A stretch of 64,000 nucleotides of DNA from Dimorphilus gyrociliatus (lineage: Eukaryota > Animalia > Annelida): NCBI GenBank assembly GCA_904063045.1, contig CAJFCJ010000005.1, positions 4,307,689 to 4,371,688 of the forward strand, read 5' to 3'. Every line of letters begins with the position of its first letter. Position 1 is the stretch's first letter. The notes beneath the pieces were generated by a model. It saw only the letters and a program-made list of their open reading frames with translations. It had not been told where the DNA came from and searched no databases. A program made the position numbers and the translations under genes. Below, in pieces: positions 20,120 through 32,300 of this stretch.

Positions 20120-23100
20120 CTATACATTGTGTTGAAAGGTTATATTTCCTCCAACATGAAAGGTTGTCGTGTCTGTTTGTCCTGGATCATACATTCTGTT
20201 ATGTACATCTATTGGAAAACTTGGTATTGTATTTCGGACGTCCATTTGACCGGTAACTGCTGGCATAAAAAATTGCGATATGCCAACGTTTGGGCCCATT
20301 TGATTTATGGGTTGGAGTAGTGGAGGAAGATTCTTTTGCATAGTTTCATTTAAAATAGCTTGCTGTTGAGCTACTGCGACGGCGGCTTGATTAGAATGAT
20401 GAGTGTGACTAAGTTGGTGAGGTGCAGCAGATACGGTATTAGGAGTAAAAGAGGTTGGTACCAGTATGGATGAAGTATTTATTGGATCTTTAGAATTTCC
20501 AATAACAGCTGAAACTGCCTGCTCTAAAATATCCTTTTGAGCGTGATTATCCTCTTGAGAAACTGGTACGTGTGAAAGAGGTATAATGTCGACTATAGGG
20601 CCTTCTGTGCCATCTTTAACGTGTCGTCGTCTCTCCGGATGCCCTACTTCAGCTTTTCCCGTTTTCAGATGAAGTCGAATGTGTCGGTCGATAGCCGACT
20701 TCTTTCTCGGAGCATAGTCGCAATAAGGACAGGGAAACCTTTTCTTTGCCGTATGATTATTACTTCGATGTCGAATAACGGACACTAAAAAAAATGTATT
20801 TTCCTATATTAATTTAATAGCTAAAATACGATTGTAATTAATTAATTAAAAGGAGAAAAATTAATTTAATAATAAAGATAATTGAAGTTTAACGTAGTTA
20901 TATTCATATATAAAGTACATGCTGTATGTACAGTATATATACCGTATATGTACGTACCAGTAGATATAGTCTATATCTATACCGTCTATGTTGATACACT
21001 TACGCTTTATATTTATTTATAGAGGGGAAGAGATTTAAATAAAAAAAAAAAACTATGATCAAAGGGCGAAGAATAAAGAACTAAAGAGGAGAAAAATAAA
21101 AGGAAGAAGGAGAAGAAGAAAACAAAAAAATGAAATAAAACTTACATCTATTCTTAAAAACTTTGCCGCAAATATCACAGCAGTGTTCTACTCTATCGTG
21201 TTGTTGCATATGTTTCCGGAATAGACTTCCAGCCAATAGTTCAACGCCGCATTCAGGACACTTTTCCACTGGTTTATTGAACATATTCACCTTGTGCTTA
21301 ATGAATGCGTGATGCATTAATTGGGTATTATTCGAACAGAATTCACCGCAGGTTGTACATAACTTTTTTCCGGCCTCCTTCTTAGCTTGAGGATCTAATT
21401 CGCATACGTTCACTCTCGGACGTCCCCTAGTTCTTTTCTCGCCGTCACCTTCGTCCATTGCCTCAGTTGTGGGCCATCTAGGACATTTCTTTTTATGTAA
21501 ATTCTTCATAGTTGGCAAATAGAGAGCGTTACAATATTCACACTTTTCTTTCTTATTTGTATGCTTCATTTCATGACTCTCTAAGAAACGTGGAAAAGAC
21601 GTCTGGAATTCACAATAATTGCATTTCATTAAATTAACGTATTCAGGCCAAGGCAGACTGTGCAAATGATGCATATGGTGAAGAAGCTTTTGTAATGATT
21701 TTCTACCGCAAGTTCCGGATTGGCCTTGGAGCATATATTTTTTGGGACACTGGGGACAAGTAACCGATAGATAGCTAGTGTTCGGCTCTCTAACAAAGTG
21801 GAGTTTTTTAAAATGTTCTACTAGAGCTAACCACGAAGAATAGCAGACTTTCTCGTCGTTGTCGGCCCCGTCGCATAGAAAGCAAAATATAGTTTTGGCT
21901 TTTGGTGAAGAGGTGACTTTAGCCCTTCTAGTACATTTCTTTTTTCTTTTTCGTTTCGTACCTCTCTTTTGAACTTCTTCTACTTTCAACTCTATCATGG
22001 CATCTTTATCTTCTGGATCCTTAGTTTCGTTAACACTGTCGATGTCTTCTAGAACGTCGTAATTGATATTTGGACTAATACTTTTTACAATTCGACTCGA
22101 CCGTCGTCTCTTGGGGGTTGGTGAGGTATCGTCAACATTTGATCCAATACTAGCGTGGTCTTGATCGTTGTCGCCTTCTTCCTCGTCGTCGTCGTCTTCT
22201 TCGTCGTCGTCTTCTTCTTCCTCTTCCTCCCCCTCTTCGAAACCACCGTCGTCGCGACTTCCTTCCGCTCTTTTCGTTTCGCCTTCATTGCCATTGGGAT
22301 CGTTAACGCTACAGCTATCCGATTGGGAATTTGAGATGATTTTTCGTTTCTTGAAGAACTTTCGCGGTATTTGAGATAATTTTGTAACATTTACAAGCTC
22401 ATGATTTTCTGAATTTTCCAAACATAAACTTTTTAATTGAAGTCTAAAGAAATAAAGGTAAAAAAAAGGAGATAAATAGAATTTTCAACATAGATTTTAC
22501 TTTAATATTAAAATATATCAATAAAGAAGAAAAACAATAAAGTAATAAAACAATAACAAACAATAACAAAAACAAAAATACAACTTACTTATTCGTATAT
22601 ATTTTATTAACAATTGTGTTTACTACTTGATCGACTGCTTCTAACACATCTTCATCAGTCGCTCTTTTCTTTAAAACGTGAGATAATTCGGAAACCTGAT
22701 GATAAGAAAATTGTTGCCTAGTAATCTACATTGGAACCCCCTCCCTCCGGGGGAAACAAATAATGGCGGACATCTCCTTTTATTATTAACTGTTAAACAT
22801 ACCTTTTCCATGCATAATAGCGTAGAGTCTTCATCCAAAGTCATAACTGACAAACGGCAGGCGATGTTAAAAAATCACCAGAAGATTTCAGCTAAAAGCC
22901 AATTTGTAAAAAATACCCACAAAATATGGGGTTTTCGACAACGCTACGCCACAGTCGAGTACTTTTAGTGTTAAAATAGTATAAGCAAAACAGACGTCAG
23001 CACTTACAGCGTTAAAATTAAACGGATTGATATTCCAGCCACATTCTTACGGCACGTATTTAGGGCGGGGAGTTGGATTCCTTGCTCATAAATTTGTCCT

Positions 23101-23353: not shown

Positions 23354-26300
23354 ATGAGTTCAGACGAATCGAGTATTAAAGAACTTCGTACTCATCTTTA
23401 TAAAAATATGAAAGATAAAGGATATCTATCCAATTTGAAGGTTTAATACTTTTTTATCAAGAAAAACTGTAAGTGTAATTGCATATTCTTTTTTCTTCTT
23501 CGTCTCTCGTCCTATCAGTGCCAGTTAAGGAACAAATTACTGGCCGATTTAAAGACTAAAGGACTACAAGCTGAAAAATTAAAGTCTAAGGGAACCGAAC
23601 AAGAGCAAAGTTTATCAATAAAGGCGGCAAATAGTATAATAATAGATCATTTGGAAAAATGTAAAATGGAATATACACTGAGTATGTTCTTACCGGAAAG
23701 TAATACTGAAAATAATATGGTACGTAATAATTAATTATTTAGATTAATTGTATATGATTTCTATCTGTTCAATTCAAGGTTTTCAATACAAGTGAATTGC
23801 TACAAATTCTACGTATCAGTCCTGAATCCGATTTATACAAATATTTAATGGAAGATTCTTCAGTGAAGAGTGAAGAAGGTTATATATATATATATATATA
23901 TATACTTTATATGTTTTATAGTATTCAATAATATACTCTTAATAATAGGTTTTCTATCAAAATTGCTCAAGAGAATTTCCGAGGAGCATGGTTTGAATAA
24001 AATCGCTTCAGCATGCCAAACTGATACTTATATTCAACCTCACCATTCATCTTTAGGTAAGTAATTACAAATCAAAGTTAAAGAGAAAAGAGAAAGAATG
24101 TTAATTAACTAAAAGAAATTGTCGATGAATATAAATTATTCATTCTAATATAGACTTTTTTCTTTTAATTCTCTTCTACTTTATCAAAACTATCACGAAA
24201 TCAACATGAAAACAACTGTAATTAAATAAAAGTATATAAATAAGAGAATAAGAGCGAATTAGAGAAAAGAGAAAGAGAGAGAGAGAGTGAGCGGAGTGGG
24301 GAAGAAAGATAGAAAATATAGAATTAGATATTTATATTGTATACTTTGTAGGAGTTTCTATTATTATTGTTGTTATTATTTTTATCTTATTACTTGGCGC
24401 TTTCCTCCTTCCTTCCCTCCCTGCTTTTTTTTTAATTAATTATCTTGCCTATCATTCCTTGCCGAGAATCTAAATACAGCTTAATTTAACTGTTAAATGA
24501 CTATTGTTCTAACCTCAATATATACCTTGAATAGAAGTAGAACAACATCTTGCTCGTCTAATATAAGAATAACAAAGAAAAGAAAAATCAGTAGTATTTA
24601 ACCTTAACATTTCTGTTTATCCTCTTCAACAAATCCTATTCTACTCTTCGTTCTATCTCGTATTAATAAAAAAAAGAACATCTCTAACTGACGGATTGAC
24701 CTGGAGGCGAAGAGAAATAATGGAAATATAAAAAGTATATATATTGGACATTCAGCGAAGCGTTTGATTGTAATCAAGGGAATGTCGATCCTGCTTTTAT
24801 CAATCTGGATTTTAACGCTTATCATCTTTGATAATGAGGTTTTCCGGGAATTGGAGCTAAGGGAATAGATGGCTAAATTTTCCTTTAATAAAATACTTTC
24901 CTTCTATTTTTATTTATTCAATTTCTCTAATTGAGGCGTTTCCTTGTAATTAGGTGAAAAATTCGACATTAAAAAGCAAAACATAGGTCTAGAGAGATAT
25001 TCTAGAAGAGAAGCAAAATATAGAATATAGAACTAGCTAACAATGACAATGATATAATACAAAGTTTATATACTGTATATAAAATTTATATAGTATAATT
25101 AAAGAGAACAAATTACATAGTCTTTAGCCTTTTAAGTAACAGTTCAACTCTAAAATTTATGGTTGAAAAATACTTGTAATACTTTGGTTTGTAGCTTAAT
25201 TTCATCCTTTTTTTTATTTCACAGAAAATAAAATGCAAATGATAGACAACAGTTTTACGGATGCCTCTAGGGAACATAGATCAGTAGAATTCGAAAATAG
25301 AATTACGGCTTATAAAAAAGAGATAGATAAACGCTCCCGAGCCGATTTTGAAGCTGAGGTAAGCGTTTTTCTATTCCATATTTTTAATAATTTACATATG
25401 ATGTATATATACAGTATATATTACATATTATACTTTATAGCTCGCTTGTTTACTTTTACATCCATCCTTCCTTTAATATATTGTAGATCATACGTTTCAA
25501 AGAGACAGAAATTAGTCGTATTCGAATAGAAGAAAGAGAAAAATTACGTGAACAACTAGATGCTACCAGAAGAGAAGTATTAAGAGAATATCCTTAAAAT
25601 ATATATACTCGGCTTCCGACTATATCGGACCTAACATACTTCTTATTTTGTGTAGTTGGAGAGGACTTACCACGTGAAAGCTGAAGCGTTACTTCAACGT
25701 GAGAGGCACGCTGTAGAAAGAGTTCAACAACAGCAAAGTGTTTGTATTTAGAAAAAACATATACAGTATACAGTATATACAATATATTAACATGTACTTT
25801 TTTGCGCTAATAGATTCAAGAGAGAGAGGTCTATAGCCAAAGACAAAGTCTTTTGGATGAGATAGAAGCCGTTAGAAAGAAGGAAGCGCAAGTGAGAAGA
25901 GACGCTGAATTGATGAGAAGGTAATGAAGATAAATAATTAACAAGGATTGACAAATTGAGATTACTCTATATTTATTTCTGTCGCATGCTTTTCCCTGAT
26001 TAGAGAGCAAATGATTCAAGAAGAGAGAATGAAAACTAGGGAAGAACTAACATCAAAAAGGGAGGAAAATGCTCGTAAAAAGGAAATAGAGCTGGCCAAA
26101 GAGCTGCATGATCAGATGAGCAAGTTAGTTATTTATTCCAAAAAGCAGATGTATTATTAATTAGTTTCCTGTATAATAATTCTATTCTTTTTTAATTAGA
26201 TTCAAGTTGGAGCAGGAGGCTAATTACATGCAAAGATCAAAAGATTTGGAATTTCGCGAATTAAAAGTTCGAGGTTAGAGTCCTAATTAATTTTATAACG

Positions 26301-29300
26301 TTATCATAAGCCTATTAGTCTAACTATAAACGTATATATATATGCAGTATATACAGCCTTCCAGCGATAGAATAGTATAAAAGATAGGCCAATAAACAAG
26401 GGCAACTGCAAGAATAATAATATTAATGATTAATTTAACTCTTTCTTTTTAGATGATCAACGGCGTCTAGATGACGAATTACGTGATATTTATAATGTAA
26501 AACAAGAGTTAAGGGAAAAAGCCAGTAGAGTTTGCCAACTGGAGGCTGAACTAAACAGCAGCAGACAACAATTAATCGTATTTGAAAAGAAATCAGAATT
26601 ACAAGCGGATAAAATAAGAGAGGTGCTTAAACTCTTCATTTATTCATTATTCTTTTCTTTCTATCCTTTTTATTTCTTATTTCTGTTCTTATCTCTCCAC
26701 TTTTCTTCTTTTACCTATTTAATTATTATATCCTTATCTTTTAGATGGTCGATTATGAGACTTTGAAGAAAGAGAATTTTTTATTGAAAAAAGATCTAGA
26801 AGTTATAAAAGAGTAAATACTTTTTTTTTAAAAAAACAAAATTCATTCCATTCGCAAAATCTATGAAAGAAGGATTCTAATTCAACCTTTATTTTTCCAT
26901 CTCCTCTCCTATTTAGCCAATACGCCCAAGCGTCTAAAGAAGCTATGGTTGAGAGAAAAAGTAATTAAAATTTGTTATCCCCCTTGCCCTATTTATTTTA
27001 ATAATTGTTTATTTTCTATTCTCCTACTCCCTCTCCCTCCCCCCTCTCATTGTAGAACAGGAAAGTTTGTATAGGGAAATGACGGAAAGAGCCGAAAGAC
27101 CTTCACCCGAGGTTATTCTTATTCAACGAGAATTGGATAAAGCCAGAGAACAATCGAAACAGCAAGAAATTCTAGGCAATCATCATAGGAATTTATCTGA
27201 AAAAAATCTTCAAGATGAGGTAAAAGGATTAATATATTTTATCTTATATTTAATGAAAACCTGAGACAATATAATAAATATTTTATAGCGTGAAAGTAAA
27301 CGTCAACTATTACAAAAATACGAAGAACAATCGATGCAAATGAAAGAGATGAATAGGGAATTAATGGATCTAAGGCAGCAATTAGGAATGACAACAAAAG
27401 GTTTCTCTTTCTCAATTCGTTCAATCATTTTCCTAATTCTTTATCTTATTGATAAAAACCTAGCACTTACAAATGAAATTTATCGAAAACCATTTGCCGA
27501 AGTTTCTAATGATTCAAAGCACGATATAAGTATTGATAGATATACATCTGGAAGGATACTTCGGGAAGAAGAAGTTCCAACGAGGTAAGTTTCTCCCTTG
27601 TAGTTTCCCTCCCTCCTCCTCTGCCTCCCTTCCTATAGCTTTTTTTAATTCATTCTAAATCCTTAACTCTTTGTTTTCTTCTTTTATTTTAATTTTCCTT
27701 CTTTACTTGTTTCTTCACTTTTTGGAGGATACCCGGTGTGTCTAATAGCAGACGAATTTATCCGGAAAAATGGCAAACATGGTAAGGAATAAGTTGATTA
27801 ACCGAATTCTTTAGACTTATTTTACTAGTTTAAGTTAATTAGACAAATAAGAAAGTGTTAAATAAATATTATACCACTCTCTTTAGGGTAGATAAGATGA
27901 GATTATACAAACCGGAACGTTTTTATATCGATCGTACGAACTATCTACCTAGATTATACAAAAATCTGGCTCAGGCCTCAGTTAGTCATATGATACATCG
28001 AAATAAAAGTCGACGACGGTACTATCTTATCTTAATGGTTTGATTACACGGAATGCGGTCACTTATTTATTATTTTATCGAGTCAGCTCCTTTTTATTCG
28101 ATTTTCTATTCACAAGAATCGATCAATTCACTATTTTATTTTTTTTGGAGTGTTGCTTCCTCTCTTCTTTCACACACACACACGCTCTCTCTGCCTTGAC
28201 ATTTATTGTTTTCATTTCATTTAGGTCCAGAGATCTACATTCCCCCGAAAGTCACAATTCCAGTTCTTCTACCGATTTAGTAGCCGAAACAAAGAGAAGA
28301 CTAAAAAGTTTAGACGCAGAAGCCGAAGTAAGTACATTGAATATCTGATTTTTTATTTCAACAGTTAAGTTTTTTGAGCGCACTATACGTAACCAAAAAC
28401 AACACTATAACAAAAAACAAGTATTATTTACATAGATATTATATATATAATCTCTGTTATCTATCTAATTATTAGAACCCTTTCTTGAAGTTTGCCTTCT
28501 CCAATTAGCTATTTCAGCTGGTCTTTTAACGTTTCGACACCTATTTCGTCTATTTGCTAACCATTTTCTTATTTGTTCCTGATTTAAACCCGTTTGTAGT
28601 GAGAGATTTGCCAACGTTTGCTTATCGGCGTACGGGTGCTGCACATTATTGTTGTACCATCTTTCTAAAATTCTTAGTGTCCTTGAATCGTAAGGCGGCG
28701 TTTTCGATTTTGTCGTTGGTATATAATTAACAACTTCGCATTCTTCGGGTGATGAAGGATTTTCCGAGTAGTGATTGTGATACATAGGAGGCGTTTTAAT
28801 CTCATTCGGTATTTGATATCCTTGCACTGAACCGACTGTAGGGGGCGAATCATTAATCGGATGGTAAGGTAGAGGCGGCGACGGCGATGGTTGTTGCGGT
28901 GGTAAGGCTGAACTAATGGGAGGCTGGGAATAATGAACACCCAAGGAATAATCGTTAAAAGGCTCGCTTGTTAAATTGTGTAGATCGACAGCTGTAAATA
29001 ACGCGTGATAATCGTAATGGAAGTGGTCTTCTACTGGTGCAATTCCTTTACCAAATTCTTGAGCAATTTGCCTTTCGATTGCGGTCCTATGCCAATTGTT
29101 GTGATTCGGCTGGACACATTTACATCCTTCACTTTTATATTGCGCTTTATGTAAATTTTTCAAAGAACATTCAATACGAGATTTCAAGCGATTTCTTTCT
29201 CTTTCGTACCGCCTTTGAACGTACTCGTCAATTCTTTCGGGCCGGTTTTTGAACTGTTCGTCGAGTTCAGCTTTGGATGCTTGATAAACTCTCCATAATT

Positions 29301-32300
29301 CGTCGGCTGCTGGTTGGTATTTTGTATATTGAAACTCTTGGAAACGACTATAGAGTGGGTCAGTCTCGTCTTTCCTTTCGCTAATTATAGGCTGATTGCA
29401 AGTTCCCAGTAGAGTGTTGAGGGCACCACACGAAATCGTGTCGTATCGTATTTTATTTAATTCTTCGGCGAGTGTTTCTCTTAAAACATTCATCGTTGAT
29501 GAATCAGTTTCGGGAGTTGATTTTAAATCGTTTAAAGGTAGAATGGGCGGTGGAGACCAAGGAGGAGGAATTGCTTCTGGCGCTAGGGACGGAGGGGGCG
29601 TTCTAGGACGGCATATGTCATTTCGGCAAACCTCAGGAGATTCCGTTGCATATCCAGAAGAATCCGAAATAGAATTGCACGATGTATCCCAACTTTCTGT
29701 GTTTTTCGTAGATGTAATAATCTCTTCCACTTGAACGTCATCGTCCGCCTCGGTGTGGTCGATTCCCGACTAGAACAGCAGAAAAAATATTTATTTTACA
29801 TAGAGAACAAAGATATATAGGCTGATGAATTGATTCGTTATTAAAGTATCCTACCGATTGCATTGCTAATTTCAGTAGGTCCATCCTCTTCGATAGTCCG
29901 TGAACTAATGGTGATTGTTAACTGTTCAAGGTCCATTATATAGAGTTATGCCGTGAGTTCTTTAGTACTTTCCAATTATCAACAAAGTTGTTGAACTGAA
30001 TAGACGCTCAACTCGTTTGTTAGCGACAGGCCTATAGGATTGTGAGTGCAGTGAACGTTTTTGAGCATTGTTTTGCTTTATACACTGCGCTCTATTAAAT
30101 GAAAGTAGAACGTAAACGGAGTATTAACAATAATTATTCATGCTATTTTGAAATAAACAGAAATTGAAGCAAACCTACGACGATTTCTACTATCGGTTGA
30201 AGGCGCCACCTAACGAAAGCCGAGAAATACCAACTACACGAAAAAAAACGTCATCATCTGCAAAATATAGGAACAATTCCAGGGGTAACTAGCTTTTTTT
30301 TCTATATTAATTATTAATGATAATTGACTAATATACGACAAAAATTAAATTCAACAGAAGCCGTTCAGGAGAATTTTGCTTATTCCCGAGAGAAACCACT
30401 CTCATCGTCAACTCCCGAAAAGGCTTCTAGGAGTTCACGACTTTATAGCGAAGAAGAACATCCACAATTGGATCCGTCTAGTTCACCACTAAGGATAACG
30501 CCTAGAAACTCGGAGGATAGGTTTGTCTATTTTGTAAAAGTCGATAAATTGTATAGTTATCTGTATATATCTATAAATATATCTATATATAAATATATAT
30601 ATATATATATATAAATTTATACTATATGTATACAATATATAAATAGAAATATGTATATTTATACAAATTTCCTTAATATCAATGTCTTTCTTTAAACAAA
30701 TCGATAGGTCTGTATCGAGAAAAGGTGATTTACGTGTGGATGATTTGGAAGCGCGACCTGGTTCTCCCCCGCTTATGATATTAGAATCGTCAGCTCATAG
30801 CTCTAAATCGAAAGGTAAGATACTATAATAAATTGTCAGGGTTAGAGCGGATTACAACAACAGTATTTATTTGTATTAGTATTAAATTAGTCGAACAATT
30901 GTACAAGCACAAAATATACATATACTGTATATATATATATATATCAACAGATTCGGAGAGAGCATCGTCAACTAAGTCTTTTACTGGTGCTGAAAGAGGA
31001 AACGAACTTCCATCCTCTAGTCGCAACGAACCACCAATTCAACCAGTTTCTTTAGACGACGCATGGAAGACTAGGACAGGTATTTATAATATATTCTAAG
31101 CTATTCTATTTATTACGTTCTATTCGTTTAAAGCTTTTCGTAAGTCGTTTTGAAGGTCATAAGTTCTCATTCTTTGTCTATCAACCTCTTTGATCCGGGC
31201 AAGTTTTTGACCTCTTAGAGCCAAATCTCCGTATCTAGATTTTTGCATTGTGGCTAAAGCGTAGGAAGGCGAATGGGGTCGGGCAATAGGTCCAGAGTTT
31301 CTAAGCATATTCTGAACAGTTTCGGATTGTTTGAGTGATTTTGTAAATGTATCTGTTCGAGCGAAAGTATAAGGTTTCGATCCGCCTATACCTCCTTCCA
31401 CTCCTTCTATTGGAAGGGTCTTGTACAACTGCCAAAATCGAACTTCCTTATCCTTTTTCCTCGTATAACTTCGCGGTATAAAATCTTTTCGGGGTTGTAG
31501 GGCATCTAACTCTTCGTGACATTTCATATTAGACGTTGGTGTTGGGTAATGGGTTCTTTCCAAATTTCGATTTTCGGATGAATCGAATGTACGATGTTGA
31601 TTCGATTCGAAATGAGAAGAGTCCTTTTCGTAAATGCTAGGTAAAGACTTGGACGTAAAATTAATTGAACTACTTCCGTATCGTCTACTCTGAATGGGAA
31701 CGTTCGGTTTAGGTAAATTAGTTTCTCCTTCATTCGACGACTCGAACGGACTAGGTAAATTTGTAGGATTTTTTTCTCGATTGGCCGAACTATTTAGCCA
31801 ATGATCTATTCTTCGACTCCTTAAAGCCGAATCTCCTACTTCTCTTCTCTCTTCTATTCCTCTCTTGAAGAGTTCCGATTCGTCGATATTTGGCACGAAT
31901 CTAACCGGTATTTGTGCTAGAACAAACGATGGATTCGGTTGGCCGCAACGAACACATCCCTTAATAGGTCGAAAATGAGACATAGTCATGAAGAAGGTAG
32001 GGAGTAGGAGAGTTATACGAATAAGAGGAAGCAAGAGCAAAAAGGGAAGAAGTTAAAGAAGAAAAAGATAGAGGAGAAGAAGATGAAGAGGAATGGTAGA
32101 AATAATAATAAGAACACAAATTGAAAGAATGCATTAGACAATAGAAAAGATGTAGGATAAAAAGAGAGTTGAATAATCAAAAAAGAGAACGGAAAGTAAA
32201 AAATCCAAATTGTTTAAAATCACAAAAGAGAACTGTCGGTCTACAGTATTCCAAAAGTTCGTAGAAGCAGAGATATTATTAACGTCTGTCTGTAAGAGTT

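Follow-up and report, generated by a model that had tools for sequence, protein, structure and literature searches.

A probable functional and lineage-restricted TALE homeobox gene antisense within an enlarged intron of a probable OFD1-type gene in the annelid Dimorphilus gyrociliatus

The stretch of DNA analysed here, referred to below as the window, comprises 64,000 nucleotides of the Dimorphilus gyrociliatus genome (assembly GCA_904063045.1, contig CAJFCJ010000005.1, positions 4,307,689 to 4,371,688), and all coordinates are those of the window unless another contig is named. Its plus strand carries a gene of about 20 short coiled-coil exons (~23.2 to ~31 kb), probably of the OFD1 type, and one intron of this host (28328..30160, 1,833 nt, GT..AG, phase 0) holds the whole of a second gene on the minus strand, which encodes a homeodomain of the TALE class. 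The main exon of this nested gene (28465..29769) consists of 434 open codons and a TAG stop (28465-28467); its open reading frame (ORF) runs from an N-terminal extension (29493..29769) through a conserved core (28969..29490) and a fast-evolving linker (28714..28968) to the homeodomain (28525..28713). We consider it likely that this is a functional, lineage-restricted and non-canonical TALE transcription factor gene, forming an independent antisense unit inside a single enlarged intron of the OFD1-type host.

In Pfam searches the 434-codon frame matched two homeodomain models, Homeobox_KN over residues 371-410 (36.4 bits, above the cut-off of 24) and, at 27.3 bits, Homeodomain; at E-values up to 1 nothing else was returned, and in particular no PBC or MEIS N-terminal domain. 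The homeodomain itself spans 63 residues (ORF residues 353-415), as supported by Pfam, the genome scan, the alignment with MATalpha2 and the orthologue, and it lies in a single exon. When the C-terminal 88 residues were compared with solved structures, the yeast TALE protein MATalpha2 aligned without gaps over 62 residues (E 1e-10), whereas the Pbx and Meis structures in the PDB gave weak matches (E about 1e-4); the engrailed alignment, with 53 query residues against 50 target residues, makes the three-residue TALE loop extension visible. The recognition helix reads IRKWLANRRNR (W48, L49, A50, N51, R52, R53, N54, R55), and the DNA-contacting residues W48, N51, R53 and R55, the last of these typical of TALE proteins, are all intact and unchanged in the orthologue. 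Three features of the homeodomain are unusual, namely PYA after helix 1 where PYP is usual, Leu replacing Phe at position 49 and Thr replacing Arg at position 5. Neither Pfam nor comparison with the paralogues revealed a second homeodomain in the nested protein, which has one homeodomain stretch only. An earlier note on this DNA had described a divergent TALE homeobox gene with its homeodomain in one exon, and this description is confirmed by the frame, the Pfam matches, the MATalpha2 alignment and the trees presented below.

A word-index protein search, using either the whole frame or the homeodomain region alone, returned two proteins only: the product of the gene itself (P0001) and an orthologue of 351 residues (P0002), which derives from a Logan assembly of a sister lineage and is 66-67% identical overall. 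Identity between the two is distributed very unevenly. In the core (ORF residues 94-267) 139 of 174 positions are identical (80%) and in the homeodomain with its tail (ORF residues 350-426) 67 of 77 (87%), both with 0 gap columns, whereas the stretch between them (ORF residues 268-349) retains only 20 of 71 (28%) and contains 14 gap columns. The atypical homeodomain residues (PYA, W-L, no Arg5) are the same in both lineages. Because two conserved blocks flank a free-running linker (Pro/Ser-rich, ORF residues 268-352), the pattern is best read as purifying selection on a functional protein, and it indicates that the nested TALE gene is selectively maintained and is not a decayed copy.

Where the coding sequence of this gene begins is less clear. 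The public model (P0001, NCBI/UniRef; 100% identical to the frame) has 342 residues and starts at the first in-frame ATG (29493, MNVLRE...), and since it is already annotated the locus is not 'hidden', as the earlier note had called it. A two-exon model of 444 residues would add a putative start exon of 10 codons (29855..29884, phase 0), whose ATG is preceded by A at -3 and followed by G at +4, and a putative 85-nt phase-0 intron (29770..29854, GTAGGA...TTTTTTCTGCTGTTCTAG, 27% guanine plus cytosine, GC) with its donor GT at 29854/29853 and its acceptor AG at 29771/29770, the reading frame being kept throughout. The open frame of the main exon begins immediately after a TAG whose AG closes a strong polypyrimidine acceptor (ATATTTTTTCTGCTGTTCTAG|TCG, exon from 29769). 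Under this model the 92 open codons between the acceptor and ATG 29493, which are acidic and Ser/Pro-rich, would be coding, and under the public model they would be 5' untranslated region.

We lean slightly towards the two-exon model as the correct one, and the alternative, in which the coding sequence is that of the public single-exon model and both the 92 codons and the 10-codon exon are untranslated or lie outside the messenger RNA (mRNA), is only somewhat less probable. The public model is the sole product on record, and the N-terminal extension appears in neither the P0001 nor the P0002 model; the latter starts 24 residues before the residue aligned with ATG 29493, and alignable similarity between the two begins only at about residue 77. 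By a codon-usage score, with a small training set, frame 0 of the extension is also no better than the other frames. Against the shorter product stands the absence of stops over the 92 codons of the extension, where the other two frames contain 3 and 5 (p ~0.002, a chance estimate from base composition), together with its exon-like GC content of 47%, which falls to 27% exactly at the acceptor where the frame opens (the 3' flank has 23%). As trans-splicing has been reported absent in Dimorphilus gyrociliatus (PMC7854359), the acceptor at 29771/29770 also implies an upstream exon, and as 5' untranslated region the extension would hold an out-of-frame ATG (29741) opening a 52-codon upstream ORF. 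If the two-exon model holds, the public gene model may miss about 100 N-terminal residues.

Further sequence signals frame the nested gene on both sides. A candidate TATA box (TATATAA, 29936..29942, minus strand) lies 58 nt upstream of the putative ATG, and a likely poly(A) signal (AATAAA, 28352..28357, minus strand) lies 25 nt from the end of the host exon, such that the nested mRNA would probably finish against the host exon or overlap a few bases of it in antisense.

The enclosing intron is bounded by a plus-strand exon ending in ...TDLVAETKRRLKSLDAEAE (28281..28327, with its 5' end at 28225 or 28281) and by one beginning with KLKQTYDDFYYRLKAPPNES... (30161..30284). At the junctions, 28327 is followed by GTAAGT and 30161 is preceded by ...AAACAG, both in phase 0, giving ...SLDAEAE|KLKQTYDDFYYRLK across the splice (...KRRLKSLDAEAE|KLKQTYDDFYYRLK). 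By count this is about the 17th-18th intron of the host; the other placeable host introns are mostly 59-180 nt long, with one further long one of 1,168 nt, and the median intron of the species is 66 bp (PMC7854359). The location claimed in the earlier note, antisense within one enlarged (1.8-kb) intron where most others are far shorter, thus stands. The second long host intron (24057-25224, plus strand, GC 28%) likewise has a GTAAGT donor and a polypyrimidine-AG acceptor, and contains no convincing open frame.

An N-terminal host exon encodes a LisH_2 (TOF-LisH) motif (23627..23707, plus strand) that matches PF16045 with 42.5 bits (cut-off 27) and is the best match to this family in a whole-genome scan. 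An ESM Atlas search with the same exon returned FOP_dimer/LisH_2 clusters (score 0.92), while a PDB search with it gave no match and Pfam gave none for other host exons. Because it is characteristic of OFD1, a gene of centrioles and cilia, to have a LisH/TOF motif ahead of a long coiled coil, the host is a probable OFD1-type gene, and the OFD1 identification of the earlier note is borne out in its LisH_2 match and coiled-coil exons and stops short of a named orthologue. The host exons presumably also resemble human OFD1 in sequence, including in the ...QQEAERLEKAFRSYHRR... region. The LisH proteins CEP43/FOP and CEP20, by contrast, are short.

It is improbable that the TALE gene is intergenic, with the exons on either side of it (one ending at 28327, the other starting at 30161) belonging to two different plus-strand genes. 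The downstream exons carry no Pfam domain and the 28327|30161 junction has been read from genomic sequence, which leaves some room for such an arrangement; however, the consensus GTAAGT donor and the AG acceptor agree in phase 0, the coiled-coil reading runs on across the junction, and no start codon or promoter-like context for a new gene is evident at 30161. Elsewhere along the minus strand, a 306-codon open frame without a Pfam match (31120-32040) lies just beyond or within the 3' part of the host and may represent either a neighbouring convergent gene or another gene nested in antisense. Upstream of the host, two minus-strand frames of 221 and 446 codons (20120-22421) contain C2H2 zinc-finger-like motifs and an acidic Glu/Asp run.

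The family relationships of the nested homeodomain were explored by scanning the whole 77.9-Mb assembly with Homeobox_KN, which gave 35 matches that were read in their open frames and against the published alignment of PMC6118893 (supplementary file 8). The canonical TALE complement comprises a cluster of three Irx genes together with Pbx, Meis and Pknox, and the scan also recovered two TALE-I copies, recognised by means of the published alignment, as well as three Six genes and further genes outside the TALE class. Beyond these, the genome contains about 13 non-canonical TALE genes, two loci having two homeodomains, and an intronless homeodomain is general among them. The nearest paralogue of the nested gene, at 1.64 Mb on contig 4, shares 36% identity with it, in the homeodomain only. 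A profile built from the two orthologues and run against 1.84 billion representative proteins gave 580 matches at E up to 1e-3, all of them via the homeodomain, the best being multi-homeodomain TALE proteins and two-homeodomain TALE-IV-like proteins.

From the matches 291 homeodomains were extracted, and trees of 91 rows by 62 columns were built from homeodomains of the genome itself and of database matches. In both trees the query and P0002 fall within a nine-member clade together with the contig-4 paralogue and six unnamed proteins (Shimodaira-Hasegawa-like approximate likelihood ratio test, SH-aLRT, of 98 in the quick tree, and support of 81/94 in the careful one), and Irx, Pbx, Meis/Pknox and TALE-I are all placed outside it. 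The clade is marked by Ala after PY (A29), present in 6 of 9 members and in 1 of 82 sequences outside, and by Leu at homeodomain position 49 (9/9 inside, 11/80 outside). The query thus groups with unnamed proteins and with a non-canonical TALE from the same genome, and it would most plausibly be a member of the non-canonical spiralian TALE radiation.

Membership of a canonical family, which the earlier note had also judged not to apply, fared poorly throughout. That the query is a highly diverged canonical TALE (Irx or Mkx) outside the non-canonical spiralian radiation is suggested by Ala at homeodomain position 50, which it shares with both of those families; however, A50 is also present in many non-canonical spiralian TALEs, three ordinary Irx genes exist elsewhere in the genome, no PBC or MEIS domain was found by Pfam, both trees set the query apart from the canonical families and forcing it together with Irx made the tree 44.3 log-likelihood units worse (approximately unbiased test, p-AU 0.045), so we give this reading very little credence. 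Three specific memberships were rejected as candidates: that of Irx, judged by homeodomain grouping with Irx (WFANARRRLKKEN), as the trees keep the query apart from the three Irx genes of the genome; that of Pbx or Meis/Pknox, whose representatives in this genome lie elsewhere in the tree; and that of TALE-IV/SPILE-B, in which the first of two homeodomains ends in KKWMANKRVR..NTL, since there is a single homeodomain here.

The same survey brought to light several other homeobox loci. The three Irx homeoboxes occupy 17 kb on one strand (C7:1067984-1084500, plus strand; L001-L003), and the two TALE-I copies (C5:1439008 and C26:144395; L004 and L005) have identical 40-residue cores that match Capitella TALE-I. 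One 330-codon frame at C7:1892320-1892724 (minus strand; L009/L019) contains two TALE homeodomains ~95 residues apart and is TALE-IV-like, and a second two-homeodomain pair lies at C6:3182859-3183316 (L015/L008). Among the database proteins, P0003, P0018, P0009 and others consist of 4-10 tandem TALE homeodomains with KKWYDEHESHPYPTKEEK...WF..ER.RRKKAAG repeats, and these arrays look far longer than the two-homeodomain TALE genes in PMC6118893.

As to how the gene came to lie in this intron, the earlier suggestion of an insertion by retroposition found no support. No poly(A) remnant was detected at the nested gene, where no run of A exceeds AATAAAAAA; one pair of flanking direct repeats alone might be a target-site duplication (18 nt, 83%, at 28362 and 30049), and it is no better than chance would give in 2 kb; no parent copy was found in the genome; and the gene probably has a 5' intron of its own. 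The intronless homeodomain is no sign of retroposition either, because it is the general condition among the non-canonical TALE genes that the genome carries, about 13 in number. Although the intronless homeodomain and the changed hallmark residues (PYA, W-L, no Arg5) might suggest that a retrocopy or pseudogene of some TALE gene happened to land in the intron and is decaying there without function, the intact 434-codon frame, the 80-87% identity of P0002 in the two domains as against 28% in the linker, the retention of the atypical residues in both lineages, the lack of any poly(A) remnant or above-chance repeat and the absence of a parent closer than the 36% identical, homeodomain-only paralogue leave next to nothing in its favour. 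Most simply, the nesting would reflect how densely genes are packed where a genome is very compact, and not functional coupling with the host; under genome compaction such an arrangement is routine, and alone it implies no regulation of OFD1.

The conserved core (174 residues) is the most distinctive part of the protein. Between the query and P0002 12 Cys/His positions are invariant in it, including C216-x-C218-x4-H223-x3-H227 and H249-x-H251-x3-H255. No Pfam family matched the core and a search of the ESM Atlas gave no usable match; the profile of the two orthologues found no relatives of it among the 1.84 billion representative proteins, and a profile of the core alone found no match among 363 TALE proteins and paralogue frames (best E 0.13). 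AlphaFold2, given the two-row alignment, predicted an all-helical structure with a central hairpin (predicted local distance difference test, pLDDT, about 65-74), and the model was judged too poor for a fold search.

Placed where PBC and MEINOX domains sit in canonical TALEs, the core may serve in partner binding or dimerisation and possibly in metal binding. A bolder version of this proposal, which we think unlikely, is that the core is a new metal-binding or dimerisation companion domain defining a dinophilid- or annelid-specific PYA/W-L TALE family, and that the antisense packing makes expression of OFD1 and of the TALE gene mutually exclusive. If true, such exclusion might set, for example, the early embryo against ciliated cells, by tail-to-exon packing of the nested gene against the OFD1 splice donor.

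The reading we prefer, that of an independent and selectively maintained TALE gene, can be set out as follows. The nested gene would be expressed from its own TATA-type promoter, with a short first exon and the 85-nt intron, and would end at a poly(A) signal set against the host exon; its protein would bind DNA through the homeodomain, with the core acting as the partner-binding module suggested above. A role in early development is a reasonable guess by analogy with the characterised SPILE genes, and some interference with OFD1 transcription, which the earlier note had proposed along with a possible sharing of the host's chromatin, is conceivable given that the nested 3' end would be antisense and exon-abutting.

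Several points weigh against parts of this reading. The locus is known here only from genomic and protein sequence, and neither a 444- nor a 434-residue product is in the protein database, the 342-residue model being the only one recorded; the P0002 model starts near residue 74, and the first 76 residues are only putatively coding or conserved. The lack of Arg5 in the N-terminal arm together with Leu49 means that DNA binding may be atypical. With 62 columns, the nine-member clade receives moderate support, and in the careful tree the bootstrap had not converged. The function assigned to the core is pure inference, from a model with a mean pLDDT of 52.8, and the OFD1 label is drawn from the LisH_2 match and the gene architecture. 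What lies here is, moreover, an annotated locus and a fairly ordinary nested gene, unusual only in a conserved front half without known relative.

The spiralian TALE expansion, known from annelids and molluscs, has been described (PMC6118893, PMC5322547), and its non-canonical members comprise the SPILE genes (Morino et al. 2017) and the TALE clades I-XIX (Paps et al. 2015, Barton-Owen et al. 2018), of which clades VI, VII, XV, XVII and XVIII are the PADRE-domain TALEs. Those SPILE genes that have been characterised are maternal or are switched on at the 4-16-cell stage, and they pattern the animal-vegetal axis (PMC8524836). The Dimorphilus gyrociliatus genome paper does not contain the word TALE (PMC7854359). 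The nested gene resembles the non-canonical spiralian TALEs in its WY..N..HPY and (K/R)KW.ANRRNR motifs, in an intronless C-terminal homeodomain carried on a poorly conserved protein, and in belonging to a multi-copy, fast-evolving set (about 13 in the genome) of restricted phylogenetic reach. It differs from the others in having PYA and not PYP, W-L and not W-F, and no Arg5, and in a 174-residue core that has no detectable relative even among them; from TALE-IV it differs in its one homeodomain. It would add a selectively maintained single-homeodomain member, from a miniaturised annelid, to the spiralian TALE expansion.

The closest published look-alike, by eye only, is the TALE-XVI A/B pair of Helobdella robusta (Barton-Owen et al. 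2018, PMC6118893 supplementary file 8). Like the query, both open the N-terminal arm with IPTTK, follow PY with a residue other than proline (PYI/PYV in Helobdella) and show the pattern ...L.NL..Q..L.E.Q.RKWLAN(K/R)R.R.RN, and TALE-XVI B is identical to the query at about 25 of 56 positions aligned by eye (about 45%). However, IPTTK is shifted by three residues between them, and this identity is no higher than that of several unnamed database proteins. TALE-XVI has been described as genus-specific (Barton-Owen et al. 2018), and the likeness is a hint that this Helobdella-only clade may have relatives in other annelids. Next by eye come Capitella teleta HD28/HD32 of the Morino set, which have PYAS following helix 1 and VRKWL.NKR within helix 3, although identity to the query by eye is limited to about 19 of 63 positions.

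As regards its position, the pair formed by the nested gene and its host is like other host/nested pairs in compact animal genomes, with a complete opposite-strand gene in one enlarged intron among otherwise short ones and nothing distinctive about the arrangement. Notwithstanding that its core lacks sequence similarity to PBC or MEINOX (Pfam), the nested protein has the same overall layout as Pbx (PBC) and Meis/Pknox (MEINOX), that is, a conserved N-terminal module, helical here by prediction, then a variable linker and a C-terminal TALE homeodomain, and the conserved orphan domain could show how lineage-specific TALE regulators find their partners.

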